A DNA stretch of 24,626 nt from Takakia lepidozioides (GCA_030704615.1 JAKLZA010000242.1:1-24626), one strand, 5' to 3'; shown: positions 1 through 24,327, counted from the first letter of the stretch. Numbers and translations: made by a program. Notes: generated from the sequence alone by a model not told the origin.

Positions 1-74
1 TGGGAGTCAGGCGCGCGCATCAAAGCGAGTAACTATGACTTGAAGGGGAGTTTACCGAATTGAGGTGCGCGACA
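1..74 (+). mobile_element. 3' end of an LTR of the same family as element 1, in opposite orientation (truncated by window start)
   Basis: 1-74 is the reverse complement of 136-209 with 2 substitutions; ends in ...GCGCGACA (CA terminus). Confidence 0.9.
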
Positions 75-135
75 GTTTTTGGACGTTCCAGATCATGTAA
101 TGCGGCGAAGATATGTCGTCAGTAACAAGTCCGCT

Positions 136-859
136 TGTCGCACACCTCAGTTCGGTAAACTCCCCTTCAAGTCATAGTTACTCGCTTTGATGCGCGCGCC
201 TGACTCCCAACCTGGCCGCCGGGCCAACTTGGAGTTTCGGCTGCTCACCGGGACATAACGGTCCCCTTCCGCTTCCCTCTAAACCCTCCACCTATTTGGG
301 ACTAGGAGAATTCCCTTTGGTAGATGGCAGTCCGGAACAGCTCCCCACTCTTTGGTCGCTTTCCGGCTCGCTCGCTTACTCACTAGTTTTTGGTCACCAA
401 CGGGCTTGCACCGTTCTCGGGGTTACTACTCCCTATATATACTTCTGTAGCTGTCCGCGGGGGTTTCATAACCAGCCATGCCATTTTATGGCGAACCACC
501 ACGAAAACCCTCGACTCCCGGTGGTGAGTCGCGGTGAGTCTTGGCCCACTCACCGCGGCCCCAATGGACCGTGATGAGTCCCAAGACTCCCCACGACTCC
601 CACCTCGAGGTCTCCACCCCATGGTGAGTCCTATGCCACCCCCACTAAGTCCCACTAAGCTACCACCACCCCTTGTGGAGCCACCTCCACCGCAACCCGG
701 TGTGCGGGGCTCCACCTAGTGAGCGCCTCCGCCTCCTTGAGTGCCTTGGGCACTCAAGGGTGCTTCAGCCCCCCATACCTATCGCTGCCGCTGCCCCCAC
801 CACAGGGGCAGCCCCTCATGTGTCCCGACCCCCTGCCCTCAAGGCAAAGGGCCGCGACA
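136..859 (-). repeat. 3' LTR of element 1 (724 bp)
   Basis: Direct repeat of 6383-7105; the only difference I saw is a C5/C4 homopolymer indel; 6-bp terminal inverted repeat TGTCGC/GCGACA. Confidence 0.93.
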
Positions 860-871
860 CACACCCCTACC
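860..871 (-). promoter_or_regulatory. Polypurine-tract-like sequence (GGTAGGGGTGTG) abutting the 3' LTR
   Basis: G-rich tract immediately 5' of the TG start of the 3' LTR on the minus strand; imperfectly purine. Confidence 0.6.
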
Positions 872-1765
872 AACAGGGAGTCGATGTCCTCATCGACTTG
901 TCCATTTTGTAGAAACGAACATCCAAGTTGTGGCGTCCCACATCAAGGAGTTTGTTTCCGTACCATGGCGTCCCATGGCAAAGAACCAAACCCCACACTT
1001 GACTCCACTCTCCACTAGCTAGTTCGGCCGACTTCCTCCAAGTCCCGGCCAAGGGTGGAGCCTCTCCAGCTCCTCCCAGTGCACTCTTCTTGGCCTACTT
1101 CAAGGCCAAGGAACGATCCTCCCCGAGGATCGAATCGCCTTACTGCAACAACATTGCTTGCGATCGCTCATGATGCCGCTTTTGGCATCACCTTGAGCAA
1201 GGGTTCACCTGGAACCCTCTTTGACTAGGAAGATAACCTTGAACCAACCGTGCGCCCCAATCACTACAATTGGGTCCGCCTTGGAATGCTGGCCTGAGGT
1301 ACGGGAACACGCCGAAGCCGCACTACGACTTCGTCCCGAGGCTACACGATTATAGTACGTGAACGGAAGCACGTAGCTTCCGCGTTAGCCCGCACTACAA
1401 GGCAACCCCCTCGGTAGCGCAGTTATAGTACGCGCACGCGCCAGGTGCGCACTAGCACTTGAACTCCCAAATAAGGCGCAAGTTTCCTTGCCCCTTGGAT
1501 GGGAGTCACCCGATTTCGGCACTGCGCAAACACACGATTAACCCAATTTACCTCTCCCACTTTTGTAAGCTAGCATGCATTCTACACACCAGCCAACCAC
1601 ACCATGCATCACCATTCCAAACACAATAGGACGCACAATATTTGGAACCCATTTCCTTTATCACAAATTTTTGTACAATACAAGTTTTTGCAATCGGATT
1701 CCTGAGCTAGCTAAACCGGGCTAAGCATGCATTTCCTCCCCCACGCTCCAAGGTTGATGTCCCCA

Positions 1766-4700
1766 TCAACGCTTCTTCCGCTTTTGAGGTCGCCCTTCGA
1801 ACGCTGCAACTGCCTCGGATGCGTTTCCCATTTCTGAGGCACGCACCCAAGATGCCTCCACAAGATGATAGCCCTTCCATTTGACGAGATACTCCGTTTC
1901 TCGGTTCTTGAACCTCCTCGACTTAAGTATTGCCTCCACCTCGTACTCGGGTTCATTTTCATGATCCAACAGCATAGGTGGCGGACGCAACACTTGCTGC
2001 CGATTCGGACGTGCTTCATCTTTGAAGTAAGGCTTCAAAAGGGAGACATGGAATACTGGGTGCACCTTGCTGTTTGCTGGCAGCTCCAATTCATACACAT
2101 CCTCATTCATAACCCTCCGAATGCGAAAGGGACCCGCATACGGAGGTACGAACTTCGGACTCATTTCCGGAGGTAGTCGAAAATTCTTGATGTTCAACCA
2201 GACCTCTGTGCCTGCCTCAAACTTCACTTCCCTCCGCTTCCGATTCGCCTGCCTTTCATACCGTTTCCTAGCTTTGGCAATGTTGTACTTTGCGAGCTTC
2301 AACAAACGCTCGCGTTCTTCCAGTACCGCCGCTACTGCCGGTTCCTCAACGTCCTGGGCGGCCCAACTTGTCGGCACCAGAGGTGCTTTTCCATAGACCA
2401 ACACAAAAGGGGAAACTCCCGTCGCGGAGTGTTCTGTGTTATTATAACAGAACTCTGCCGCGTCTAAGTGTTCCATCCAGTCTGATTGGTCTGCCGACAC
2501 GTAATTCCGCAAGAATTGCTTCACTACGGAATTCACTCTTTCCGTTTGGCCGTCCGTCGTAGGTCGGAAGGCGGTGCTCATCTTCAGCCTCGTCCCCATC
2601 TTCTTCCAAAGTGCTCTCCAGAATTTACTCGTAAACTTTGGGTCGCGGTCCGAGACAATATCCTTCGGGACTCCATGATGCTTTAAGACGTGGGCGAAGT
2701 AAAGTCGCCCTGTCTCCTGCGCAGTTGCCGTCTCCTTGGTGGGGATGAAATGGGCCATTTTACTGAACCTATCTACCACCACCATGATTGCATCGAATCC
2801 TTTTGACAGCGGCATAGCAGTCATGAAATCCATCGAGACGCTTTCCCAAGTCCCCTCTGGAATCGGCAAGGGTTGTAACAGCCCCGCTTGCTTTTTATAC
2901 TCGCTCCGGTTTTGTTGGCATGTGGTGCATGTCTTGACATACTCCTCTGCCTCCTCCCTCAGTTTGGGCCAGAAATACTCTTTCTTCAAGAGTGCCGCAG
3001 TGCGCTTGGCTCCACCGTGGCCCGCAAGCGGGCTATCATGGCATTCTCTCAAGAGACTATCCCTGATCCCTCCCTTTGGCACATAGAGACGTTTTTGCTT
3101 ATACCGGAGCAGTCCGTTTTGCAAGTGGAACTGCGATTTAACCCCCATTCTCAAGTTCTGCATCACGCACTTTGCCAGCTCATCCTTCCGGCAAGCCTTC
3201 CGGATCTTCCTTTGGAGCGCCGTCTCGCCCTTGTACACCAACAAGAGCTGCTGCTTTCTACTTAAAGCATCGGCCACCACATTGTCCCGTCCCGGTTTGT
3301 ACTGGATATCCACGTCGAACACTGCCAAAGTATCTTGCCACCTAAGTTGTTTTGGGGACAACTTGGGCTGCGTGGCAAAATACTTCACCGTGACATTGTC
3401 CGTGAACACCTTCACTGGGTTGGAACCAACATAGTGGCGCCAGAGTTCAAGGCAATGTACCACCGCCTTCATCTCTTTTTCGTGCGTCGGCCACCGTCGC
3501 TCCACTTCATTCAGTTTCTTACTTTCGTAAGCCACTGGACGTCCATCTTGCATAAGTACACCCCCAATTGCGAAGTCCGATGCATCTGTATGAATCTCAA
3601 ACGGACGATCGAACTCCGGGATTTTCAAGACTGGAGCTTCCGTCATCCGCTGCTTCAATTCAGCAAAAGCTTGGCCACAAAATGTGTTCCATACCCAGAC
3701 TTTGGATTTACACAGAAGGTCCGACAGCGGCCCCGCGATCTTGGCGAAATTTCTCACATACTTCCGGTAATAGGAGGCGAGTCCTAGGAAGGATCGCACT
3801 CCCGGGACCGAAGTCGGAGGCTCCCAGTCCAAGATCGCCCTCACCTTTCTGTCATCCATTTTGATCCCATCCTGTGTAATCACGTGCCCCAAGAACTCCA
3901 CTTTTGTGACCCCGAATTCGCACTTTGAAGCTTTGGCATACAGCTTCCCTTCTCGCAATTTTTGGAACACCCTTTTGAGGTGCTCCAGGTGCTCCTCCTT
4001 TGTTTTCGAGTACACCAAGATGTCGTCGATGTACACGATCACAAAGTCATCCAACCACTCCTGGAAAAGGCTGTTCATCAGCGTGCTAAATGTCGCTGGT
4101 GCATTGGTGAGCCCAAAAGGCATCACCAAGAACTCATATGAACCATACCTTGTCCTGCACGCGGTCTTCTCCTCATCTCCTTCCGCCACCCGAATTTGGT
4201 GATAGCCGGAGCGCAAGTCGATCCGGCTGAAATACTTCGCTCCTGCCAACCGATCGAAGAGGTCGTCGATCCTTGGCAAAGGGTACCGGTTTTTGATAGT
4301 CACCTTATTCAGAGCCCTGTAATCGACACACATCCGCAGCGTCCCATCCTTCTTGTCTGCAAATAGCACCGGGGCTCCGTAAGGTGACTTACTCGGCCGG
4401 ATGTACCCCTTTGACATTAGATCTTTGAGCTGAGTCTTCAGCTCGACCAACTCTTTGTGGCTCAACCGGTAGGGCGCCTTGGCAGGCGGTTCCGATCCCG
4501 GTATCACCTCAATTTTGTGGTCAACTCCTCTTCGCGGTGGCAAGCCGCTTGGTAAATCCTCCGGCATCACATCCTGGTATTTCTCCAAAATCCCCTTGAT
4601 CCAATCTGGGCTCGGCTCCCCATCGCCTTCTCCTTTCACTTCTCTAATGTAAAGCAAAAACTGGGACTCGTGTGTCTCCTCCACGGCCCACTCCTTTGCT

Positions 4701-6154
4701 GATAGAAGGTTTATTCGCCCTCCCACGGATTTGGGCGTTTCCGACACTCGTAAAACCTCGCCACCATTCCCACATGGCAGCGTGACTACTCTCTTGCGGC
4801 CATCTATGACCGCTCCGGATTTGCTCAAAAAGGTCATTCCCAAAATGAGATCCACTCCATCGATCTCGCAGATAGTGAAGTTCTCACGTCCCTCCCAACT
4901 CCCCAGTTGAAGAGGAACATCAAACGCCAACCTTGTCGCCAACTGAGGTTCTCCTTTGGCAGAGCGCACCTCAATAGAGGCCCCCACGTCACTTGTCGGG
5001 AGTCCCAACTTTCGCGCCGCCGCCGGCGTCATGAAGGAGTGCGACGCTCCTGTGTCCACCAACAACGACACATTAGTTCCGGATATTATCCCATCCACGA
5101 ACAATAACTGACTCCCTTTTCGTAAGGCGCCAGTTTCCTGATACAACTCACAAGAAAATTTGCCTACCTTGCAAGTCCTGGCGACCACCGCTTCCACCAA
5201 GCGACTGATGGTATCTTCCGACAGCTCCGTGGTCGCCCGAGTCATGTTCAATTGCCGGGGCTTCGTGCACTTCTTGGCCATGTGCCCGGGCTCCCCGCAA
5301 TTGAAACACACTCCATCAAAGGTCGCCTTCTGTCCGCCATAAGTCGCTCCACCCGCTTTTCCTTTCGAAGCACCGGGTGCCGCCTTGACGTGTGAAGGAC
5401 CTCCCTTCGATTTCCACGTGCCATTTTCGCCGCGTGGCCTATCCCACTTCTTTTCCGGTCGGGAGGAGTCACCTTCCCGCCGGGTCTTCTTGTGGTTCAG
5501 CTCCGTACGGCCTTGTCTCTCACCCCTAGGGACATCCGAGAAACATTCAGCTCTCTCAATTGCCTCGTTCAAAGTCTTGGGTGGCTTCTCCTCCAACTTC
5601 CGCCTAGCCCATGGGGCCAGTCCCGCCACAAAGTTGAAGACCATTTCTGGTTCTGCCATGTCCGCGACTTCGAGCAACAGCACATTGAAAGCCTGGACAT
5701 ACCCCCGAATGTCATCTGTTTGCTTCAAATTCCTCATCTTGTCCCGGGCAAGCCAGGATGCGTTGAGGGGCACAAACTGTCTCTTCATCAATTCCTTGAA
5801 CTCACTCCAGTTCAAGGTTTCCGGGCTTGGGCCTCGGTCGTGAAGGCGTTTCTGCCACCATTGTTGAGCATAGCCCCTCAAATAGGTGGGAGCCACTTCC
5901 ACCCGATCCTCGTCACTCAACTTGGCCGCCCGGAAGTACTGCTCTAGCTCCAGGAGCCAGGTGTTGAGTGCCTTCCGGTTTCGAACGCCCTCGAAGGTGC
6001 CGGGTTCCTTAGGCTTCACCTTAAACTTTGCCTTGGTGGAAGTGGCATTAGCCGCCTTCAACACGTCTTTCAACGTCCCGCCAAACTGCGCCAACAACCC
6101 TTCCCAAAAGGCTGCCGGCATGGGAGGCATCTCTTGGTTTGTCGGAGCTCTCAA
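1766..6154 (-). CDS. Gag-Pol polyprotein (Gag, CCHC knuckle, aspartic protease, RT, RNase H, integrase, class I chromodomain)
   Basis: [14 protein letters not shown]; [10 protein letters not shown]; YIDD; TDASD/HEKE/TDN/DALSR; [12 protein letters not shown]; SMDF/SDRD/GQTE; GPF motif; [21 protein letters not shown]. The true start is probably the ATG at 6327 via a 1-nt frameshift. Confidence 0.97.
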
Positions 6155-6368
6155 AGATTCCTCGGGCTCCGACTCCTCGGATTCCTCCCGCTCCTGAGCG
6201 GCCTCGTTTTCGGAAACATTAATCGCTTCCTCAAACGGCCGCCTCGTGACACGTCGCCCCCATCGGGCTCACCGGGATCATCATCTTTTGGGCCGTTCCG
6301 CTTTCGCTTCGGCTTGCCCGACCCCATGATGAGGCCAATCCCAAGGACGATCGCGTACTGAACTCTAA

Positions 6369-6380
6369 GCTCTGATACCA
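6369..6380 (-). promoter_or_regulatory. Primer-binding site complementary to tRNA-iMet
   Basis: Minus strand TGGTATCAGAGC, 2 nt after the 5' LTR CA end. Confidence 0.95.
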
Positions 6381-6382
6381 AG

Positions 6383-7105
6383 TGTCGCACACCTCAGTTC
6401 GGTAAACTCCCCTTCAAGTCATAGTTACTCGCTTTGATGCGCGCGCCTGACTCCCAACCTGGCCGCCGGGCCAACTTGGAGTTTCGGCTGCTCACCGGGA
6501 CATAACGGTCCCCTTCCGCTTCCCTCTAAACCCTCCACCTATTTGGGACTAGGAGAATTCCCTTTGGTAGATGGCAGTCCGGAACAGCTCCCCACTCTTT
6601 GGTCGCTTTCCGGCTCGCTCGCTTACTCACTAGTTTTTGGTCACCAACGGGCTTGCACCGTTCTCGGGGTTACTACTCCCTATATATACTTCTGTAGCTG
6701 TCCGCGGGGGTTTCATAACCAGCCATGCCATTTTATGGCGAACCACCACGAAAACCCTCGACTCCCGGTGGTGAGTCGCGGTGAGTCTTGGCCCACTCAC
6801 CGCGGCCCCAATGGACCGTGATGAGTCCCAAGACTCCCCACGACTCCCACCTCGAGGTCTCCACCCCATGGTGAGTCCTATGCCACCCCACTAAGTCCCA
6901 CTAAGCTACCACCACCCCTTGTGGAGCCACCTCCACCGCAACCCGGTGTGCGGGGCTCCACCTAGTGAGCGCCTCCGCCTCCTTGAGTGCCTTGGGCACT
7001 CAAGGGTGCTTCAGCCCCCCATACCTATCGCTGCCGCTGCCCCCACCACAGGGGCAGCCCCTCATGTGTCCCGACCCCCTGCCCTCAAGGCAAAGGGCCG
7101 CGACA
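6383..7105 (-). repeat. 5' LTR of element 1 (723 bp)
   Basis: Near-identical to 136-859; adjacent to the PBS. Confidence 0.93.
6681..6688 (-). promoter_or_regulatory. Putative TATA box of the element 1 LTR (copy at 434-441)
   Basis: TATATATA is the only strong TA run in a GC-rich LTR, ~300 nt before the LTR 3' end. Confidence 0.55.
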
Positions 7106-7183
7106 CCATACCTATCGCTGCCGCTGCCCCCACCACAGGGGCAGCCCCTCATGTGTCCCGACCCCCTGCCCGGGGCCGCGACA
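7106..7183 (-). repeat. Extra 78-bp variant copy of the LTR 5' end
   Basis: 7106-7171 repeats 7019-7084, then GGGGCCGCGACA; it lacks 9 bp present in the full LTR. Confidence 0.85.
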
Positions 7184-7335
7184 TCAATACTTGGTTCCAT
7201 CGATTGGCTCAATCTACTGTTTTGATTGGTATTAATTTGTTTATGCTCTTCGTTCGGCTGCTGTTTTTGGATTGATATATCGATGGATGTTTGAGATTAT
7301 CTATCTTTGTCTGACTTTGGATTTTGCTTGAACAG

Positions 7336-8650
7336 TGGGATGACGATGGTTGATCCATTCGGCATTGAACAGTTTGTATTCCCAACACTTTTTGCTTATA
7401 TCTGTGATCATCCGGAGGGTTGTAAGGTAACATTTTCACTCATTAATTATAGTCTTCAACTATCTAAAAACAAGTCACATGCACCAGACAGCCTATAGGG
7501 AGTGTTTTGACTACTTTTTTGTTGAGTGATACATGAATGCTTTGTGGTTAATACAGATTACAGGGACTTTTGACACAAACAAATGCCAGAGGCCATGTAG
7601 CTTATGTTTATGTGTCAAGGAGAACATGAGTGACACGATGCTACCAATTATGTACCCGACAGAATCAACAATGAAGTCACTTGTTGAAACGACGAATGAG
7701 AACAGTGAAACCTTGAAGCAATATTCTGTACATTCGGTTGAGGTATGTAAGTCTTTAAATGTGGCTGTCACCTTCCTTGACGGGTTTCTGGTTGGCTGGC
7801 TATTATGTAACTAATGACAGTGTTTATCTTGCAGTGTGCACTTTGGGGTTTCAGCGGAGGTAGGACAAAGATTGGAAATCCTTACAAATGCATTCATGTT
7901 GATATTATGCACCAATCAGATCTGGGGGTTTTTAAGACTCTAGTCGACATTCTCCGGATGTTGGCAGAGGTGGGTGTGGCCCATAATCAAACTTTACCAG
8001 AGTTGGATCATCGCCTTTTGGTTATTCGAAGGACTGCTCGTTATCAATCCTTTCGGATACCTGGAACAGACAAGGGTGGCTACTTTAGATCCAATGCTAA
8101 TTTTGCAGCCTTTGAACATCGAGCTATAATGCAGGTTATTGTTCTGTGTATGGTGGGTTTGTATGCTGACACGCATATTTCAGCCATTGTCAAGTTTCTT
8201 GAGTGGTATCAGTTGGCCTGTCATAAATGCGAGTATTCAGAGGCTTCATTGGCAGAGATGGAAGCCCTCCTGCGTGTGACAATCTCATCCTTCAAGAACA
8301 ACCTAGTAGAATATCAAAAATCCTCTTTCAACTTGGTCAAAATCCATGCTATGACGCATTTCAGCGACTCAATTAGACGTTCAGGTTCACCTTTCGAGTA
8401 CAACACAAACATGTATGAGCACATGCACATCAACTTGATGAAAGCTGCCTATCGAACCAGCAATCGACGCGATTTTACTGGTCAGATTTTGAAGCACAAC
8501 TCACGCTTGCAAGCCTATCGTCGAAAGGCCGGAGAGTTGGAGGCATTTGAAACAACTACCGAGAAAGTCACAGCTTTAGATCAGGCAGTCCATGTTATGC
8601 CGAATTTTTTGGAAGCAAACCATTTCTTCGTCAACAAGTACAAGTTTTAG
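7336..8650 (+). CDS. Plavaka-type (CMC/CACTA-related) DDE transposase, 5'-incomplete; exons 7336-7426, 7557-7742, 7835-8650
   Basis: Spliced protein GMTMVDPFG..FPTLFAYICDHPEGCK|ITGT..RPCSLC...SVE|CALW..VDIMHQSDLGVFK..ELDHR..FNLVKIHAMTHF..YNTNMYEHMHI..KAAYRTSNRRD. It has the CxxC, MH and Hx3H signatures. GT-AG introns 7427-7556 and 7743-7834 are both phase 0, with a CTAAT branch point at 7811. Confidence 0.85.
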
Positions 8651-8656
8651 TTGCTT

Positions 8657-8830
8657 TCCTATGAGTTGCTTTCCTTCTCCTAAAGTTGTTTCCATTTCTA
8701 CAGGTTTGCCTCCTTCCTATGTGTGTGTTTCCATGCCAAAATCTCCTATGAGTTGCTTTCCTTCTCCTAAAGCTGTTTCCATTTCTACAGGTTTGCCTCC
8801 TTCCTATGTGTGTGTTTCCATGCCAAAATC
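8657..8830 (+). repeat. 87-bp tandem duplication (2 copies) just after the transposase stop
   Basis: 8657-8743 vs 8744-8830, one mismatch. Confidence 0.92.
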
Positions 8831-10311
8831 CTAAGAAAATTGATTATAGGCCTTTGAGATGAATGGAAAAGACAGTTTCTATGCCAATTACAGTTCTTCT
8901 TTCGTCTTGAATTGCATTCCTCACCAATCTGGAGCTGCTTTCTTTGGGAACAGGAGAGGACGATTGCGATGTAGACAGCGTGCATAGTGACATGAGCGCG
9001 GAAGTATCGCAGAAGTTGCTGCTCTTCTCAGGGAACGATTACCACTAACGATTACGTTAGCCTTATGTATCTTAGATCCCCCTATTTGATGACTTGTATT
9101 CTGCAGCAACATTGGGTAAATGCTATGTCAGGTATGCCATGCCTTGTGTTTGTGTGGGGAGATTGTCAAAGAGAGGGGGTATGCAAAAAAAAAAAAAAGG
9201 CCCAGTCCTAAAGATTATTGCCAATTTATGTTCTCTTTGTTTATGGTTGTACCCAATTACACACCCTGTCACCTAAATGAGATTGAAGAGTCATGTTACA
9301 AGCTAGCGGCTGCATTGGTGTCTAACTCTGCAAGGGCATAAGATATAAGGCCTTACCACTGGGGTGGGTTCAGGATTGCTTACTCTATCCATCTGCATTT
9401 GCTGCCAACATGGTGGTGATTGCCAGTGTGGCTCCCAACCTGGTGCAAGGGCAGGAGAGTGTGATGGCCATATTTCAGACTCTATAACACGTCAATCATA
9501 GATCAGGTGCGTATTGCACAAAAGGAAAGCAATTCTGAAGTGTATGTTTACAAGCACAATGATATGGCCCACCTGCACTTGATGTTGTAAGTCTACCCTT
9601 CTTCTCGGCACAATGTTTATGCTTGCTTGTCTCTGGTTTGCATCAGTCAGAAGTCTGACCTACTTTTTAATATTAAGAAACATATACTGGGGCATGGATT
9701 ATGTTGTCTGTCTTATGATACACAAACAAAGTGAGTAATTTTGTGGTGTTGTTAAAAGACAGGTCCAACTGCTGCAAGCAGGAGCGTAAGGTGGTGGTCA
9801 CAGACAGGTGTGTTGCAAGGCTCTCTCTCTTTCCCTTTCTCTTTACCTCTTGCTCACTTCCTTGTTCTGCTACCAGTTGTGTCATTGAGGCCTGGTATTA
9901 TGTGATTCACACAGACAATAGCATTGCGGTAGCCACAAGTTCGTAAGCTGGGCCTACCATCATTATCAGAGCTGGCCAAACTACGAAGTCCTCCCCAGAC
10001 AAGGCCCTTGGAAAGGGAGGCTGTTGAAATGATGGGTCCGGAGGCCCTCCTTGTGGTATGTGAGGGATTTGCTATTCTATCAACTATCAGCCATCAGTCA
10101 TCAGCCATCAGTGTGACGTGGATGCGGAATCGGCGGCCACGTGGCAATATAATATTTTTTCTTGGGCTGCCCGTAATTGTATGCTTGGATTTGCGAGAAA
10201 CAATAATGAAAAATGACATGGGATTGTACTGACACACCACCTTTGGCTGCCGAAGGTGGAGGCTGAGCGGGAGAACATAAAGATAAAAATGAAATAAATG
10301 AATGTCGAAGG

Positions 10312-10350
10312 AAAAAAAAAAAAAAAAACACAACAACAACAACAACAACA
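10312..10350 (+). repeat. Poly-A plus (CAA)n microsatellite
   Basis: Direct reading. Confidence 0.9.
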
Positions 10351-10567
10351 TGAGATATGGACTTCTAACGTTGAAGAATTCTGCACAAACGTGGAAGAAT
10401 TCTACATGTTTTTTAGCCATTTAATCTCTAGCTTGGATTATCGTATCCTACGGAAATATCCAGGGATGCCGGTGAAAAATATATATATTTGTTGGACCTA
10501 AGTTGAACAAAGGTGGCTCTTCTGTCCTTGTATAAGACACTTTTCGCTTTTTGGAATGTGATCAATT

Positions 10568-10987
10568 TCAAACTCTAATTGTTTTTTTTCGGGCAGGTTC
10601 GTTGGGCAGATTGAAATGTTCTTGTTCACCTTTGTTGACCTTCGTCACTGATGGAATTGCGTTGGTAACTGACAGAATAGGAGCTCTCTGGTATGTGATA
10701 GAGCCCCTCAGAAGTAAAGACGAGAAGGGCCAAAGTGAAAAGAGAAATTTGAAATTTGAAGAAGTATGCATACTGGCAGGTGTGGTTCCTTTTAGAGTAG
10801 GGCTGGTAAACTCTATGACACCTCTTATTTTGACAGTAAAGGGAGGTAGGCTCAGACATTCGGCAAGCATTGAATAGTTGACTGGTCTTGTGCTGTATTT
10901 TAAGCTTACCGTCCTATTGCATGTATTTGAGTTTAGATCAAAAATAGCATTTGCTGGAGACAAATCTCCATCCCTCAATTGGAACAA
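10568..10987 (-). other. Unassigned 139-aa ORF
   Basis: Open frame without recognisable motifs; the complementary frame is also largely open, so the strand is uncertain. Confidence 0.2.
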
Positions 10988-11308
10988 GAGGAGGTGTTTA
11001 GATTTTCTTGCATTTCACCTTTGAAGTGATTTTCTTCATTGTTATCGCTACAGCTCACTATATTGTGCTTAAGTCGACAGCAAGCAGGGGGGCTGCTATT
11101 TCATGAGCGGCATGAGCATGAGCGGAAAAAAAAAAAGCATGAGCAGACCATTGTGAGTCCACGGAAATAGGGTTAGGAGGCACGGAAATAGGGTCATGTG
11201 AAGTTGGAATGTGGCACCAGTGGACTTGAAATGCAACATTTTATTGCAAATTTTGTGGCAAGCCACGTCTATACAAGTGTGTTCTAACTGTCATAGCCGG
11301 AATGGGCA

Positions 11309-14300
11309 CTACTTTCCTACACCCTCCGAGGAGCTTGCCCCACCTTCTTCCTCATCCCCCTCATCCCCCTCATCCTCCGAGCTCTGTGATGCATCAGTTC
11401 CACTATGCCTCTCAAAAATCCCGTCCTCTCCTTGGGGGACTGTCCACCTCACCTCCTGGGAATCTTCTGCGTCTTCTCCCCCACTTTCCTCAGCAAAATC
11501 CAAGACAAATCTACGAGCCCGACGGGCTCTAATAGCTGCTGCCTCCTCCCTCATCTTCATTTTCTTGAGGCTTGCCTCGTCTAAAATCTGCTGTACACGA
11601 CTAGGTTCGGAACACCTCCTAATGGACACCGAAGCAAGCCGGGCAGCATAAGTAGGAAGGATGTACTCCCTTTCTGGACTAGGCATGAAATCCCCCCTGG
11701 CAAAAAAATGCACGTTCCTCCTGCCCATGAACTCCGGTGTAGACGTCCCTCCGGCAGTACTTGGCATCCTACAGTAAGAACAAATCCACTTCAAGAATGT
11801 CAATACCAGCACAACCAGAAAGGGTTTTCAATGAAATAAGAGAGCGGAGGGAGGTGCCTCACGAAATCTGGAGGCAACTTACAATGCCACCACTCACTCG
11901 TAAACCGGGGGCTCCTCGGCCTCGATCCCAACTTCCTCCCCCTGCTCCTTCTCGGATTTTTCCTCATCCTCCGAGGATGCCTCTTCCTCTTTCGGCAGAC
12001 GTTCAGCCGCTGCAAGTTCCGAGTTGTGGAGGGCAGTATCTGGCTCGAAGGCGAACACATGCCTGTCGGACAACGTCCCTGCCCACATTGAAGCACCTGA
12101 GGAACAAAGCGGGCGGTTAATAGCTTGCGGCATGCAATTGCAATCGGGCCAGGGGACAAACTGAGCACGTGAAGGCTTACCCGTGCCGCATGTGAGGTCC
12201 AGAATCCGCCCTTGGACATCCGAGCACGTCTCCATGAGGGTTTGGATGAAAGCAGGGCTCCGGGTCCGGCTGTACCGCCACGGTTTGCCTGTCTTTGTGT
12301 CCTTCGGCATACTGGAGTGGGGCACATAGTTGTAGAGGACATCGTAGGTTACAGGGTCCACAGCGGCATCAACAAGATGACCGTCGTTGCAGAATTTGAA
12401 CGTAGACTCTCTCTTCACAAAGCAATATGCCTCAAACACCAATGTCTGCACATCCAACAAAGAAGGGATCAACTCCAGGGTCTACTTAACATACACCACA
12501 ATATGAAGTGAATGCAATAGATTGATAACTTACACTTTGGCCCTCTGTTTGCAACCCCTGTGTACTGATGCAGAACCATTTTATGAGGAGGACCGGGGTG
12601 ACACTTTTTGGTGTCCACCTTGCCACCGCATTCTCTGTGGTCTTCCCTCTCGTGGCAAGGACAACCACACATCCACCGTCATCCAGAAGCATCCCCGCCA
12701 GCCCAAACCCGGCTTTCCAGTAGTCCTCAGTAAACCTGTTCCAGGTGGGCACACCATCCAGGCCCTCCAGCAGCTCCCCATCTGGAATGTCGAGGAGAAT
12801 CATGTCGCAAGCTCTCTCCACCTCAACCCCCCCCCGAGTGCTCTTGCAATCCGTGCTCACAGCCGTGAAGAGTTCCATCATGGCTTCAAAACCAGGGGTG
12901 TCTTTAGGCTCTGTACCGCCAGCCCTCTTCTTGGCTTTCCCCTTCTGCTCCGCCAGAGACTTGCTGTGTGCCACCTTCTTTGCCCTGGCAGCGAGAGCGT
13001 CAAGGAAGCTCTCATTGACGCATTGGATGATGGTTGGAGGTTCTAGCTTTGGCCTGTGCGTAAACGTCACCGCCGAATACCGTCGTGTAGGCTCACCCTC
13101 AAATGCCAACTTCTTGGCAGAGCCAGTCCCACTCCGAACTGACTTGGGAACCCGGACGACCGGTGACTGGGTAGGAGCAACAGCAGTCGCATGACCTTGA
13201 ACAAAGTCGTCGTCCGAGTCACTCTCTTGGGTCCCCTCCTGCGCCTCCTCCGATGCCCCGATGGTTTTCTTCTTTTTGGGTGTTACTGCACTCACCTGTT
13301 TCCTTGTCCTTTTCCTTTGGCCTTTACTCTTCTCATGCAATTTCTCATGAATTCCTGCCTGAGCAAGCTCTGCCGCTTTCCTGGAGTTCGCAAGCGCTTT
13401 TGCCTCTTTTGCACCCAACGGAGGCAACGGAGCCCGGTTTCGTCGGAATTCAGCATCCAGCTTCAATTGAAACTCGGATGGGTCGAGCGAGCCGGACGGA
13501 AGGTCCACATACCAAGGGCAATCACGCAAATGTTCCAGATGCGACTCCTTCACAATATCGTCAGTGTACATGGAGTCAGCCCCAGGGTTCCTCCATGCCA
13601 GGAAGAATGGTGGCTCGAAAGACAGATGACCTTTCTCCAAAAGGGAGAACTTGCAGTACCTGCATTCATGAAAAACACAATGAGGTCCCTGAAATGCATA
13701 TTCGGCACCATTTTCCCAGGTTGGGGCGGATGTGAGTGGGCCTAGAAATGGAAAAATGGCACCGAATTTCGGTTTTCGGTGACTGCCACCTAGGGACTTA
13801 GCCATCTTGGGAGCCCTGAACTGGAAATTCGGCGCCATTTTTCCCGGTTTGGCCCGAAGATGGCTAAGTCCCAGAACCGCAATAGGGCCTAGAACTGGAA
13901 AAATGGCGCCGAATTTCCAGTTCAGGGCCAGCCACCCTAGGGACTTAGCCCGAAAATGGCTAAGTCTTTGAACGGCAATAGGGCCTAGAACTGGAAAAAT
14001 GGCGAAGAATTTCCAGTTCAGGGCCAGCCACCCTAGGGACTTAGCCCGAAAATGGCTACGTCCCTGAACGGCAATAGGGCCTAGAACTGGAAAATGGCGC
14101 CGAATTTCCACTTCAGGGCCAGCCACCCTAGGGACTTAGCCTGAAAATGGCTAAGTCCCTGAACGGCAATAGGGCCCGGAACTGGAAAATGGCGCCGAAT
14201 TTCCAGTTCAGGGCCAGCCAGTCTAGGGACTTAGCCCGAAAATGGCTAAGTCCCTAAACGGCAATAGGGCCTAGAACTGGAAAATGGCGCCGAATTTCCA

Positions 14301-14977
14301 GTTCCGGGCCAGCCAGTCTAGGGACTTAGCCCGAAAATGGCCAAGTCCCTGAACGGCAATAGGGCCTAGAACTGGAAAATGGCGCCGAATTTCCAGTTCA
14401 GGGCCAGCCAGTCTAGGGACTTAGCCATTTTCGGAGCCCTGACTGGAAATTCGGCGCCTTTTCCCTAACACCACATGAGGCCTCTAACATCCTGAAATGC
14501 AAGGACTTGAAATAAAGGCAGCGCGTATGTACCTGTACAGAAGGCGCATTGCTGCTTTGTCCGCGTTCGGCTGGTCGGTGAACTCGTGGCTCCGGCGAGC
14601 ATCTGCTATCTCCCGAAAGAATAGGTTGGTTTTGTAGAGCAGAAAGTACCTCGTCACATAATCGCGTAGGCTCTCTGCTGCAAAAGATATCTCCATCTTG
14701 AACTGATGTGCTTGTGTGTCCAACTGCTCTTGCGCATTCGTCGTCACCTGTGGAGATTCTCCATCAGATCGCTTTCCTGAAAAAATACAATGAATCCACC
14801 CCCTACTAGAGTAGAAGCCCCAAACGAAGCGTGGGGAAGTACCTGAAACCACCATGTCATGCGGTTCATCCACATGTTGAATGTGGGGTCAGAGAGTTTG
14901 TCCGGTTTGGGGAAGCTCCACATGTCCCTGGTACTTTGGGAACCATTCCAGATTTGGAGTCACCGGGTCTGTCCAAC
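11309..14977 (-). CDS. Multi-exon gene for a beta-class (permuted) DNA N4C/N6A methyltransferase-like protein, interrupted 5' by element 2; exons 14977-14843, 14747-14533, 13659-12534, 12445-12181, 12096-11898, 11768-11309
   Basis: Five GT-AG introns with compatible phases (0,2,0,1,2) give 2400 nt (800 codons). Motif order: IV (CDMILLDIPDG), V/VI (WNRF..YW..LLDDGGCVVVL), X (RSPAFIQTLMETCS), I (RILDLTCGTG|ASMWAG), II (RHVFAFEPD). One TGA lies near the insertion site (~14960). Confidence 0.8.
13738..14465. repeat. 95/96-bp tandem array (~6-7 units) with internal hairpins, inside intron 13660-14532
   Basis: Unit starts (GGGCC) at 13885, 13981, 14077, 14172, 14267, 14362; inverted sub-units near 13815-13845 and 14438-14465. 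Confidence 0.93.
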
Positions 14978-16056
14978 TGTAGTGTGAATGCAGGGGAGTG
15001 AACATTACATATGTTTACCATTACGACCTGCATCACTATGACGGGAGTGCCCGTCATCCCAACTGCAGAAAGGATGTATCCCTTCATGTAGGTAATTTCA
15101 TGAGCGCACTGAGCTTATGCTTTGCCAGGAGAAAATGGCTAAGTCATGACGGTACACATTTTCATCCATGCGATGAACGTTTTCATCACTGGTTCTTGAC
15201 CTAAAAGATCGCGGGTTGAGAAAAACGAAGAGGAAGATGACGGATGGCTCGTAGCGGCTGTTGCAAGCAGTGGTGTCGGCAGGGCAGCCTGTGTTAGGAG
15301 GTTGTACCTGCGCGGTGGGATCTTGCTTGGCTTAGGAAGTGGCATTAAGACGCCTCTGCTTGGTATTCTGTGTAGAAAGAAGCGGTGCCGCCTCTCTCGT
15401 AGTGATGATCAATTCCAAGAGATAGAAGCATGTAAGGAAAGCGGCGCACCACCACTGCCGCCAGTGCCTTGAAGATGATAGTTATGGGCAGATGAGCAAG
15501 CAAGGAAAAGGCCAGCTGCTGAAAGCACAGGGAAGAGAGTCTGGGCACAATCAATGGGGGGAGGTAAAGCATGTGGAGTGCTGGCTGTATGGTATCTCAG
15601 GTTCTTTGTCATCAAGCTTCTAGCTGCTTTGTGTCTCCTTGTTATAGGACCAGGCCAATTCGTGAGGAAGAATTGCATAGCGTAATCTGGTTGTCAGGCC
15701 CCGGGATGGTCCAAGTGAAGAAGGGGAGCCATCATGGCGTCATAAGGTCTGGAATCAAGACAAAGAGTAAGGGTTGAAGTGGCTGCTGACGGGCGATGGC
15801 AAGGTGCCACCTTGACAGGCAGACCCGCCGCTTCACTAGTGGATAAAAACAGATAAGTCTATGAACAGTGGCCCTTTTTTGGTGAACTTAGAAATTGCTT
15901 TGGTAGATTTAGGACTGCCATCTTGGCAGAAGAGAAAAGGTGGAGACATGTGACAAGAAAAAGTTTTTGAAATGGGAATGGAGACTCTGGACTTCAGACC
16001 AGAACGTGGAAAGGATGGATGCACCTGATGTTGTGATGACAGTGAGAGAAATAAGT

Positions 16057-16124
<68 letters not shown>

Positions 16125-17207
16125 CATGTTCGTCACTGAATTCAGAATGGTCACTATTGTCTTCATTCTTGCATTCTGATTCAGTGTCATAAACCTGGAC
16201 ACCATGCTGCCGTGTGTAGTGATAACCTGGAACCAATGTAGATCTGGCTTGTTTGTTTGGAGAGATCAATGATGGTTAGCCGGAGCTGCAAAAAACATGG
16301 AAAGGATAAGGTGATTTCAGTATGGGATCAGGATCTGAACAACTGCGTTCCACAGTTGAAGGGAAAAGAGGGATGTTGGGGTATTTGAGTTGAAGTCTGA
16401 CAAAAGAGATGAGAGCTGTTTGAGCGATGGGTCATTGGAAAAGGGGACAAGAGAGAGAGAAAGAGAGAGAGACTGATGGATGGGATGGTTGTGTCTCGAG
16501 AGACCAAGGATGACTTCAAGGCTGGCTGCACTGGATGCCTAGCAGAGTGTGCATTTACATTACATGACAGATCTGCTGCTGTGAAATAGTGGGGAACCTG
16601 GGGACATAGACAGAGATAGAGAAACAGACAAAAGGGGAAAAGAAAGAGAGAGAGTGAAAAATGGGATTTGGGTAAGGAGAGAGCTGCAATTCAAAAGGGC
16701 TGTTGGGGGGTTGGCCAATTTGGGGAGATGAGATGAAGAAAACCTGAAACCTGAAGGAAACCAGTGCCCCTGCAGACCATGAAGATCTGAGCTGCCTCCT
16801 CCTAAATCTGTGTCACCACTACAAAAAGGGGATTTCCGACCTGTCACTGCTCAAGTGGGCTTCACATAAAGGATCGTGTTTACCGCTGCCATTGGGCTGA
16901 TTTGCATCACTGAACACATAGCACCAGCATAGCTGGTGCTGTACCTGCAGGTAGGGGATGTTGTGTAAAAGGAAGAACCAAGAGTGAACAACAAATTGAC
17001 TCCCCATCCATGTCTTCTCTTCCGCTGCGGCGTGGATGAGGATTGCTTGAACTCTGATCACGAAGGAGCTGAGGGAAACCCACAGCCAAGTGACGACAGT
17101 TGGACAGATTAGAAGAACGTTTCTTTCCTTTTGCTCCGCTTAGAATGGAGGGGAGCACAATTAGAATTATACAGAAGGGGATTCACGCCCCTTCTTTTCA
17201 CACTACA
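14978..17207 (+). repeat. 5' LTR of element 2 (~2230 bp)
   Basis: Starts TGTAGTGTGAA and ends TTCACACTACA (11-bp perfect terminal inverted repeat). The first ~1420 bp are repeated at 23195-24626; the 3' boundary is inferred from the inverted repeat only. Confidence 0.85.
16060..16124 (+). repeat. (GA)n microsatellite within the LTR (shorter copy at ~24282-24327)
   Basis: Direct reading. Confidence 0.92.
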
Positions 17208-17268
17208 CAACCACCCAGCATATTCGTAAGCGCCAAACACCACAAAAAGGAGTTGTTGCCACCACAAT

Positions 17269-19980
17269 TTGGTTAAGAATGTATCACCTTTTCTGTTGCA
17301 TCCACACAGGATGTGGCTAGACGATGGAGCTTCTCCAATGTCATCGTGGGCTTCAGGGCGCGAGAGTAGTGCTTCCCCACCTCCACCAGAAAGTCGGCAC
17401 CAAGGGCGGGATCAGCTATGGCCACGTACGTTACCAATGGACACCATTAAACAGGAGAGTAGACAAAGGGTTCAAACATACTTCGATAGGTTGAACCGGT
17501 TATTTATAAGAAGTGGGGCGTCTGATTTGGAACAGAGGCGTAGATTTGCAGCAGGTTTGAGACCAGAAATAGCAAGAGTAATGCTGGACAGGCGCTTCCT
17601 TGATGTAGAGGAAGCACTTGACACAGCCATTGAGATTGAAAGGGGCCTGGGAAAGTTAGGGGAAATACCTCTAGAGCCATTGGAAGGAGATGATACAGAT
17701 GAGTCAGTTGTGTTTGTTAACCCTCTGGACAGAAGACTTGATCAGCTGAACACTACCCTACAGAAGTACTTTGATAGGGGACCAGTCATAGGAGAAAGCT
17801 CGGGATCTAGAACACCACCTCGTGTTCGCCTTTGTAATGTTTGTCACAAAGAAGGTCACATAGCTGCATATTGTCCTGAAGGAAGAACCCCAGCTAAGTG
17901 TGACAAATGTCACCGGTTCGGGCATTCCACAGAAATGTGTGGTGTAAGATGCAACTTTTGCAAGCTACTCGGGCATACGAAGAGTGAGTGCAGTAGAAAT
18001 CTTGACCAAACTATGATGGGAACTCCGGGAACTAACTTTGTAGATGTGTTCTATGATGATGAGGATGATGTACTCGCAGAGATGACAGATCTGATGTCAC
18101 AAAATAGTATCAATGAAGTCAGACTTCCAAGGACACGCATACCTATCCAGAGTCCGATTGTTGAACCTACAGGGTCACCAGAAAGGAATAGTGAGAGCAG
18201 TGAACAGCCAAGCAAGACAAAGAGTGAAATCTACCCAAAGAACAATTTCAAGAATGCTATAGAAGGAGGTACGAAATCCAGAATCTTGAACCACTTCTAC
18301 AAAGGGAGAATATCGTTGTCGCCCATGGACCTGATCATGACTGTGCCCGGAGAGCTAGACAAATTGAAAGGGCTGGTCAAAGTGGTGGAAAGAGCAATGG
18401 TCCAACAAAGGGAGACAACTCACAGTGTAGAAGTTGTGAAGGATGTACCAAGGCCTTTGTACTCAGCACACGCTGAGCCCACGATCTCGTATGCTTATAC
18501 TGGTAAGGTAAAAGCGCTTCATGTAATGATTACAATGGGAGATTACCAAGTATTAGGCCAGATTAACACTGGTGCCATGCTTTCTGTAATATCAGCTAGT
18601 ACAGTCAGGGATCTTGGTTTGATGGGATCTGTCATTACTAGTAAGGATGTGAATTACAGAGTAGCCTCAGGTGCTCTTGAGACTGCAATGGGCAGACTTG
18701 AGGACATCAAGGTCAAAGTAGGAGAACTGACCAATCGTTTGTCCTTTATGGTGGTGAACACGGATACATATCACATGCTGCTGGGATTAGACTTTCTCAA
18801 AAAGTTTGGCGCTGTAGTGGACACCGAAGCTGAAACAATTTGCGTACGCTATGGGCCAGGAAAGGATTTTGCTCACTTCCCTTTGCACACCATCAATTAT
18901 AATGAGCCTGCAGTTACCAAAACAGCCTACCATAGAGGGGTCGAGAGTAGAATGAGATATGCAAGCAGTACGTCAGCAGGTAATGTCTTAACCCTGACGT
19001 CAGATGAACAGTACCTAGGCTTGTGGGAGAAGAAAAGAAAACCTGAGGAAGAATATGAGGACACGGAGGAAGCATCCTCAGGTTCTGACACCTCTAAATC
19101 TGATAAAGATGAGGAGATGGGAGGCTCTGAGGAGAGTAAGGAGGTAGAAACAGCACTGAGGGATGTTGAGGAAATAATAGACGATGTCAACCTAGGGGAG
19201 GACTTGTTCGAGGACCAAGGGATGTCTGAACTCCTCCAGGAAGAGACCCATAAGAGCATGGCTGCTGCCATAATACAAGAAGCTTACCAGAAAGCTTGGA
19301 ATGGTGAACTAGGGAACAACAACCTAGAAATAGAGGATGACTTCCATGATTGGAATCAGGTTGTCACACAAGAGGAAGGACAGAGAATGGCTAACTTTGT
19401 AAGCCAGGTGGAGGGAATGAATTGGGAACCCAGTCAAGAGGAAGAAATGGAGAGTCGTTGGAGAAGTCTGAAATCCAGACTGCACATCAACCCAGAACTG
19501 GCCCCAAAACATAGGATAGAGCTGGAGCAAGAGCTGAAAGCAAACCAGGAATGCTTTGCTCTTAGCAAGGTTGACTTGGGATACTGCAGAGAGGTGGAAC
19601 ACACAATTGACACACAAGGTTTTCCCCCTTGCAGAAGTCGTCCCAGCCGCCTATCAGAATGGGAGGAAGACGAGGTCCAAGGACAAATTGAGACTTTGAT
19701 CTCACAAGGCAAGATGAGAGAGAGTAGTTCAGAATGGTCGTGTCCAGTTACCCTTCCACCAAAAAAGGATGGATCCAAGCGGTTTTGTGGTGATTTTAGG
19801 CCAGTAAACCGTTTAACCAGAAGGGACTCTTACCCTATGCCATTAATTCAGGATGTTTTAAACCAGTTGGGGAAAGCCAAGTGTTTCTGCGCTGGATTTA
19901 CAATCTGGTTTTTGGCAGATCAAAATGGACGACCGAGACATAGGCAAAACAGCAGTGATCACAAAGAAGGGATTGTATGA
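17269..19980 (+). pseudogene. Gag (3 CCHC knuckles), protease (NTG), acidic spacer and N-terminal RT of element 2
   Basis: CNVCHKEGHIAAYC, CDKCHRFGHSTEMC, CNFCKLLGHTKSEC; GQINTGA..LLGLDFL; SEWSCPV..KKDGSKRFCGDFR..DSYPMP; frameshift at ~19886 before ALDLQSGFWQI. Confidence 0.9.

Positions 19981-24279: not shown

Positions 24280-24327
<48 letters not shown>

Follow-up and report, generated by a model that had tools for sequence, protein, structure and literature searches.

Do a transposase gene and a methylase-like gene that lie tail to tail belong to one mobile element, or are they the remains of two elements that came to abut? This is the question raised by a 24,626-nt stretch of DNA from Takakia lepidozioides (GCA_030704615.1 JAKLZA010000242.1:1-24626), referred to here in its whole length as the window. 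The window is eukaryotic and mostly transposon sequence, and older DNA with both genes sits between two long terminal repeat (LTR) retrotransposons. The original prediction read the two genes as one Plavaka mobile unit, in which the transposon encodes its own DNA-modifying or DNA-binding factor. We lean, with some reserve, towards another reading. Two old DNA-transposon gene relics would lie tail to tail, one of them encoding a methylase-like accessory factor, and the proximity to Plavaka would be abutment rather than a conserved unit. Both relics would later, and recently, have been struck by Ty3-type LTR retrotransposons. The methylase-like protein would serve a transposon as an accessory factor, binding DNA and perhaps also S-adenosylmethionine (SAM).

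The two genes are convergent and their stop codons are 2658 bp apart, in agreement with the spacing of about 2.7 kb first given. The parts of the two genes and of the DNA between them are as follows.

7336-7426, 7557-7742 and 7835-8650, plus strand: exons of the 3' part of a putative Plavaka/CMC-type DDE transposase gene, with GT-AG introns, phase-consistent
8651-11308, no strand: spacer without coding sequence, from one stop codon to the other, GC 41-44%
11768-11309, minus strand: exon 8 of the methylase-like gene, GT-AG, frame kept
12096-11898, minus strand: exon 7 of the methylase-like gene, GT-AG, frame kept
12445-12181, minus strand: exon 6 of the methylase-like gene, GT-AG, frame kept
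~13739-12534, minus strand: exons 4 and 5 of the methylase-like gene, GT-AG, frame kept
13738-14465, no strand: tandem array within the intron that separates exon 3 from exon 4, eight copies of an imperfect ~43-nt palindrome centred on GGCGCC
14777-14959, minus strand: downstream half of exon 3 of the methylase-like gene, 45% (tblastn) to L001 1853-1975 and 39% to L022 2638-2808
17285-17437, minus strand: upstream half of exon 3 of the methylase-like gene, 39% to L001 1694-1846, 51% to L022 2491-2631 and 36% to L003 8017-8166

The linkage of the two genes was compared in related loci, all from other genomes than that of the window and at 35-74% protein identity. No Plavaka-like transposase is present in the flanks of any of the eight methylase-like loci, probed with pieces of the window and of locus L009. 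In five of the eight, the flank that corresponds to the transposase side of the window is 4.8-10 kb long; in the window itself the transposase is only 2.7 kb away. Likewise, none of the seven related transposase loci has a methylase-like gene, and in L011 the 6 kb downstream of the last transposase exon contain neither this gene nor any open reading frame (ORF) longer than 151 aa. Homologues of the two genes are unlinked in every related locus compared, an outcome of the kind that the original prediction had itself listed as speaking against its single Plavaka unit, although the evidence from other genomes is indirect. A conserved Plavaka-plus-methylase unit is not supported by the loci compared. 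Separate elements abutting each other is the more likely reading, with at most a lineage-specific capture.

The DNA between the genes can be read in the same way. The spacer has no credible ORF or Pfam domain and no nucleotide similarity to any fetched locus. GC content is 41-44% over the transposase gene and the spacer and rises, in a step at ~11000-11300, to 53.5% at the 3' end of the methylase-like gene, ~11.3 kb. From this step, together with the position of the terminus in a related element described below, a boundary may lie between the two genes. Some smaller repeats are also seen in the spacer. An 87-bp tandem duplication, perfect to 99%, occupies 8657-8830 and begins 7 bp past the transposase stop; the 12-mer AGTTGCTTTCCT is found three times in this region and has an inverted copy at 9522-9535. 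A 14-bp CATCAG-type tandem at 10079-10112 recalls the ends of PlavakaB (PMC12730594) and is far too short to call. A 139-aa ORF at 10571-10987, minus strand, gives a sub-threshold match to Nup153 that is most likely a low-complexity artefact.

Is the methylase-like gene a transposon gene at all? In assembly ERZ25073694, which looks plant-like from an intron-less 1026-aa PPR gene in L004, it is multi-copy, and 24 sequences cluster at an identity of at least 90%. Three contigs (L002, L006 and L007) share 5.4-8.9 kb at 87-91% identity and have a common right end ~500 bp beyond the stop codon of the methylase-like gene, which points outward. Together, the left and right ends make up an imperfect ~55-nt terminal inverted repeat with much GGAGCCTG, which scores 53-57 against a maximum of 38 in 200 shuffles. 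The elements in L002 and L006 also carry a large, DDE-like transposase gene (L002 12118-20202, L006 1-2381), from a family with proteins of up to 740 aa. Read by eye, this partner has a CxC...CxH SWIM-like finger and a Mutator-like '...FMADSAMANWNAV...CLLHW' segment ('D...CxxH'). Its family (P0040-P0110) is very abundant in this assembly, with 71 clusters of which some contain dozens of sequences; neither Pfam nor NCBIfam gives a match for it, and its profile matches nothing in the window. A search of the window with the terminal-repeat motif of the related element also gave 0 matches.

In ERZ25073694 the methylase-like gene is therefore a transposon accessory gene, of a different, unclassified transposon. 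The proposal that a transposon encodes its own methylase-type factor finds support here in so far as the accessory gene lies within terminal inverted repeats, but beside a different transposase. The L002 contig also holds, at 304-750, a fragment of a Tet-like 2-oxoglutarate (2OG)-Fe(II) oxygenase (PF20515, E 4.5e-26), which ends where the left terminal inverted repeat begins. This fragment is outside the methylase-carrying element and is perhaps part of another transposon that received the insertion.

The transposase of the window is, with moderate confidence, predicted to be of Plavaka type. Its first exon matches Pfam PF18759 (Plavaka) with E 3.9e-4 and 20.2 bits over 36 residues (profile positions 200-235 of 325), which is below the gathering cut-off of 26.3 bits, and the remaining exons have no Pfam match. 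We rate the assignment as moderate because the spacer ORF gave an equally weak and clearly spurious match, to Nup153, at a like E-value (4.4e-4). The read-through ...FPTLFAYICDHPEGCK / ...CQRPCSLCLCVKENM... / ...HVDIMHQSDLG... fits what we take to be the fungal Plavaka pattern 'ADYPE ... CPxC ... H.D.MH', which serves as a lead and not as a test. The natural stop at 8648-8650 is kept, as is the C-terminal end ...NHFFVNKYKF*, of which ...NKYKF* is as in the homologue L009.

Homologues of the transposase are few and fragmentary. With the 278-aa last exon as query, P0036-P0039 and the loci L008, L009 and L011-L014 are 46-74% identical, and a metagenome scan with the transposase ORF gave four JGI loci. 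All retrieved homologues are 3' fragments. The window lacks the N-terminal two-thirds of the gene, whose 5' side is cut off by the upstream LTR element (retrotransposon 1, see below). Between the end of that element and the first exon, 7184-7335 is what is left of an intron, with AG at its end. By comparison with L009, L011 and P0037, which retain the segment, ~200 codons are deleted in frame at ~8581/8582, between 'TALDQ' and 'AVHVMPNF'. Because the 5' part and ~200 internal codons are lost, the window copy is dead and can encode no active enzyme. The spliced Plavaka-type transposase first described thus stands in its exons, its GT-AG junctions and its stop, but with a Pfam score below cut-off and with ~200 codons missing. 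Ends of the fungal Plavaka kind (TGT..ACA or CATCA..TGATG, flanked by target site duplications of 2-3 bp) are not identifiable in the window, as the copy is single, its outer flanks have given way to LTR elements and the motifs are too short. Plavaka elements have been reported from red algae, chlorophytes, streptophyte algae and moss (PMC13519894).

For the methylase-like gene, sequence profiles strongly support a beta-class amino-methyltransferase fold, as was first predicted. We aligned a spliced query (exons 5-7 of five family members) with hhalign to a PF01555 reference profile of eight enzymes, i.e., E. coli YhdJ and seven phage methylases, three checked against Pfam. The probability is 97.5% and E is 6e-12 over 201 columns, corresponding to YhdJ 33-254. 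Against YhdJ alone the spliced family alignment reaches 85% and an alignment of the C-terminal half of the family 84%; the N-terminal half alone is insignificant against YhdJ (probability 1.2%), yet its register is correct. The motif order is that of the beta class, with motifs IV-VIII before X-I-III, and the methylase-like domain (exons 5-7) spans nearly the entire PF01555. It forms the C-terminal part of the protein, ~230 residues, and is collinear with the PF01555 enzymes in the motif IV strand, motifs V-VIII, a 'vK...f.F' segment, a W, motif X and motif I. The family motif X/I is PWRGxREKSxAFxQxLIExCS...VLDLTxGTG, and motif I of the window (~12200), LDLTCGTG, aligns to LDPFAGSF, with the Asp and one Gly kept and Phe replaced by Thr/Ser.

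Searches of domain and protein libraries give a more mixed picture. The family sequence P0008, which is without the '...TxxTG' intron, matches PF01555 (N6_N4_Mtase) with E 7.6e-6 and 26.5 bits against a cut-off of 26.7, and several PHROG DNA methyltransferase families, down to 1.8e-7. The methylase-like pieces of the window have no Pfam match. The Pfam check that had been proposed therefore came close for this relative but left the genes of the window below the gathering score. No SET or other Pfam domain is present in any family exon, and a PDB sequence-profile search with the C-terminal half gave no methylase. HMMER with the 192-aa ORF at 11894-12472 against 1.84 billion representative proteins found 11 proteins, all of 203 aa or less and all from metagenome or read assemblies, and no annotated full-length family protein. 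A word-indexed protein search with residues 150-546 of the 546-aa ORF, against proteins of 300-955 aa only, gave no match, and a metagenome scan with family alignment A3 gave zero. By these searches the family is unannotated; it is intron-bearing and eukaryotic.

The gene is collinear across L001, L002, L003, L006, L007, L022, L023 and L024, and the intron after '...TxxTG' is at the same position in distant members. The window copy consists of exons 3-8, while exons 1-2 are absent. In the relatives, exon 1 has a conserved FFVxDGNHRxxAW motif, which could be read as ParB-like. This exon has no match in Pfam, PHROGs, PADLOC, NCBIfam or the PDB sequences, and its AlphaFold2 model has a pLDDT of 39. 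Exon 3 is contiguous in L001 (1694-1846 then 1853-1975) and in L022 (2491-2631 then 2638-2808). As it resumes at 17285-17437, beyond an LTR block, the window gene is split at 14978 and not ended there. The upstream half of exon 3 has a GC content of 54%, like the methylase-like gene and unlike the retrotransposon (46-48%). The gene is lost only past 17446, with the gag-pol of retrotransposon 2 from ~17447. Exons 4-8 still have open frames and intact splice sites and the LTR insertions are young, which suggests that the gene was disrupted recently.

Several points weigh against the reading of two abutting relics. The loci used for the linkage comparison are from other genomes, in which cargo associations may differ. 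If the LTR insertions are set aside, both genes have 3' exons with open frames and canonical splice sites, and from this it can be argued that both genes may have been one recently active unit. No element terminus was identified in the spacer. The Plavaka label depends on a single sub-threshold match, the DNA-binding, non-catalytic role is read from motifs only, and none of the tests made of a ParB-like exon 1 bore it out. Finally, red-algal Plavaka and Mutator elements with PF01555 methylase and ParB-like genes raise the prior for the pairing in the window (bioRxiv 10.1101/2025.02.11.637652). In these algae (Bostrychia moritziana and others), giant Plavaka elements have accessory genes PAG1-3, of which PAG2 is a PF01555+SET methylase and PAG3 a ParB-like/2OG-oxygenase gene flanked by tandem inverted repeats; PAG genes occur in Mutator elements too (bioRxiv 10.1101/2025.02.11.637652).

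The strongest alternative is a composite Plavaka element, in which the transposase and the methylase-like gene were co-mobilised and the product of the latter would mark the element, shield it or regulate it. In favour of this, the two genes are convergent neighbours, 2.66 kb apart, in a single old block that predates both LTR insertions; a palindrome array is found in the intron of the window gene; the methylase-like family rides another DNA transposon elsewhere; and red-algal giant Plavaka elements carry PAG2 and PAG3, genes that move between Plavaka and Mutator. However, the two genes do not co-occur in any of the eight methylase-like and seven transposase loci, including L011 with its 6 kb downstream of the transposase free of the methylase-like gene. 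The GC content steps by 10 points at the 3' end of the methylase-like gene, and in the related element this gene lies ~500 bp from the terminus, facing outward. No termini enclosing both genes are visible, since the outer sides have been replaced by the LTR elements. We consider a composite element unlikely, though it is a real contender.

What would the protein do? Under the reading of two abutting relics it would keep the scaffold of a methylase but would not be a conventional adenine or cytosine amino-methylase. This is read from motif IV, ~12800, which is DIPDG in the window, DLPEG in L001, DCQEN in L002, L006 and L007, and DYPNG in L003, all aligning to DPPY of YhdJ. The catalytic (D/N/S)PP(Y/F/W) is not found in any aligned member; the consensus is D-x-P/Q-D/E/N-G/N, with the Asp kept in all members, the Pro in 4/6 aligned, and the aromatic always replaced by an acidic or amide residue. 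In known amino-methylases this aromatic touches the flipped target base.

The protein could still be active as a DNA amino-methyltransferase in spite of its unusual motif IV, and would then modify bases in the DNA of its element. The entire PF01555 fold is retained, including the motif X/I region, as are the Asp of motif IV and, in 4/6 aligned members, its Pro; and conservation across 20-30% identity suggests selection. Yet the base-contacting aromatic is Asp, Glu or Asn in every member, and inactive transposon-borne methylase domains have a precedent in DIRS1 (PMC4738411). Activity of this kind seems quite improbable to us.

As for what a non-catalytic protein might bind, tandem arrays are found in or beside the gene in several members. 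In the window array at 13738-14465, six of the eight copies are at 95-bp spacing. L002 has tandem units of ~350 bp at 4205-5392, each with a perfect 16-nt palindrome GCCTCGGATCCGAGGC, and other arrays are at L007 4104-4967, L003 6704-6823 and L001 4795-4937, and also in L006. It can be speculated that the protein recognises the palindrome arrays in or beside its own gene; the arrays together with the DGNHR exon suggest sequence-specific binding to the element's own DNA, as in the proposal made for PAG3, and this too is speculation.

A bolder version can be formulated, to which we give only a small chance. Green-lineage transposons of at least two superfamilies would carry a self-recognition protein, made of a ParB-like domain and a SAM-sensing, non-methylating module, and the window would hold a decayed Plavaka-borne copy. 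The ParB-like domain would bind the palindrome arrays of the element, the protein would mark the element or shield it from silencing, and it would be the streptophyte counterpart of the red-algal PAG cassette.

Very unlikely, finally, is that the methylase-like gene is an ordinary or domesticated host gene, disrupted by one LTR element and beside a transposase relic by chance: its multi-exon structure and intron positions are conserved across distant members, L003 lies near the host-type gene ATP11 and the flanks of L022-L024 are without transposase, but the family is absent from annotated proteomes except for short fragments, is multi-copy at 87-91% nucleotide identity inside terminal inverted repeats in ERZ25073694, and lies in a region of the window that is otherwise entirely transposon-derived.

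The two LTR elements on either side of the relics are real and young. The retrotransposons are of plant type, and the contig does not look human.

136-7183, minus strand: retrotransposon 1, a Ty3/chromovirus LTR element with LTRs at 136-860 and 6383-7183
14978 to ~17270-17284 (~2.3 kb), plus strand: 5' LTR block of retrotransposon 2, a direct repeat with 23195 to the window end

In retrotransposon 1 the 724 aligned bases of the LTR pair are identical, and the right LTR has a 77-bp tandem duplication. An intact polyprotein of 1462 aa contains gag, protease, reverse transcriptase, RNase H, integrase and chromodomain, and a tRNA-Met-type primer binding site adjoins 6383. A target site duplication was looked for at the ends of this element and none was found (CCGCT vs TCAAT). 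At the left edge of the window (1-209) there is an inverted copy, 74-77 nt, of the start of this LTR, which suggests a further, oppositely oriented element of this family.

The two LTR copies of retrotransposon 2, starting at 14978 and 23195, are ~98-99% identical. Gag-protease-reverse transcriptase-RNase H ORFs lie between them, and a polypurine tract is found ahead of the 3' copy (23195). The copies also contain (AG)n microsatellites, at 16059-16124 (33 units) and 24282-24327 (23 units). Exon 3 of the methylase-like gene is separated from the LTR start at 14978 by 18 extra bases, and its other half, at 17285-17437, has the LTR copy on one side and the start of gag (ATG ~17436) on the other. 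A target site duplication and a primer binding site were searched for in the 14978-17270 block, and neither was recognised at its right junction. Given the exon half between LTR and gag, the 18 extra bases and the missing duplication and primer site, retrotransposon 2 would not be a simple insertion, or two insertions would have recombined. The statement that both genes are cut at their 5' sides by younger LTR elements is thus right as to the youth of both, but the first element ends at 7183 and not at 7336, and the methylase-like gene is split at 14978.

How does the window compare with known systems? The closest is the red-algal Plavaka, a CACTA/Plavaka-group transposon associated with a PF01555-type methylase gene. 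In it a ParB-like protein is found beside tandem inverted-repeat arrays. Most of the red-algal copies have decayed and younger LTR elements have covered them, as in the window. However, PAG2 is detectable with Pfam and has a SET domain, while the window family is neither detectable in this way nor has such a domain, and it has a non-canonical motif IV and introns. Its methylase-like domain follows the possible ParB-like exon, where PAG3 has a 2OG oxygenase. The lineage looks plant-like, from the PPR gene in related contigs, and not red-algal. The family is set apart from the PAG genes by their descriptions, and the linkage to Plavaka here consists of adjacency alone. The original prediction also mentioned a clade of N6A methylases of seedless plants near Plavaka; Iyer et al. 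2016 (PMC4738411) does not contain such a clade.

Fungal Plavaka and KDZ transposons carry TET/JBP dioxygenase genes (Iyer et al. 2014; Kojima 2025, PMC12730594). The likeness is that of a cut-and-paste transposon with a DNA-modification-type gene, and the L002 element has the Tet-like PF20515 fragment alongside; but the fungal cargo is a 2OG dioxygenase and not a methylase fold, and the L002 fragment is outside the terminal inverted repeat. With the bacterial and phage PF01555 enzymes such as E. coli YhdJ the family domain is collinear throughout. It differs in that DPPY is D-x-P/Q-D/E/N-G/N and HPxxKP is REKS, and in its introns, its long N-terminal extensions of unknown domains and its setting in eukaryotic transposons. 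N4CMT of bdelloid rotifers (PMC8885841) is likewise a PF01555-type methylase in a eukaryote; it came from bacteria, and its targets are transposons. It is, however, an active host enzyme fused to a chromodomain, which silences transposons and is not borne by them. The retrotransposon DIRS1 (PMC4738411) also encodes a methyltransferase fold, in which the catalytic residues are degenerate and for which a role in binding has been proposed, but it is of the PCIF1-like clade and not of the permuted beta class, and it belongs to another transposon class.

Transposons with chromatin or DNA-modification factors of their own are rare, and they reveal how elements escape or manipulate host silencing. 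The window does not open the question of Plavaka and DNA methylases, as this has already been published for red algae. What is new is a family outside the domain libraries, with a complete predicted beta-class fold, a conserved motif IV that looks non-catalytic and conserved introns, and its mobilisation, in one plant-like genome, by a transposase family that is likewise unannotated. If the protein does bind the palindrome arrays of its own element, transposon self-recognition would have a second, independent example in the plant lineage besides VANDAL/VANC, and such cassettes would move between transposon superfamilies outside the red algae as well.

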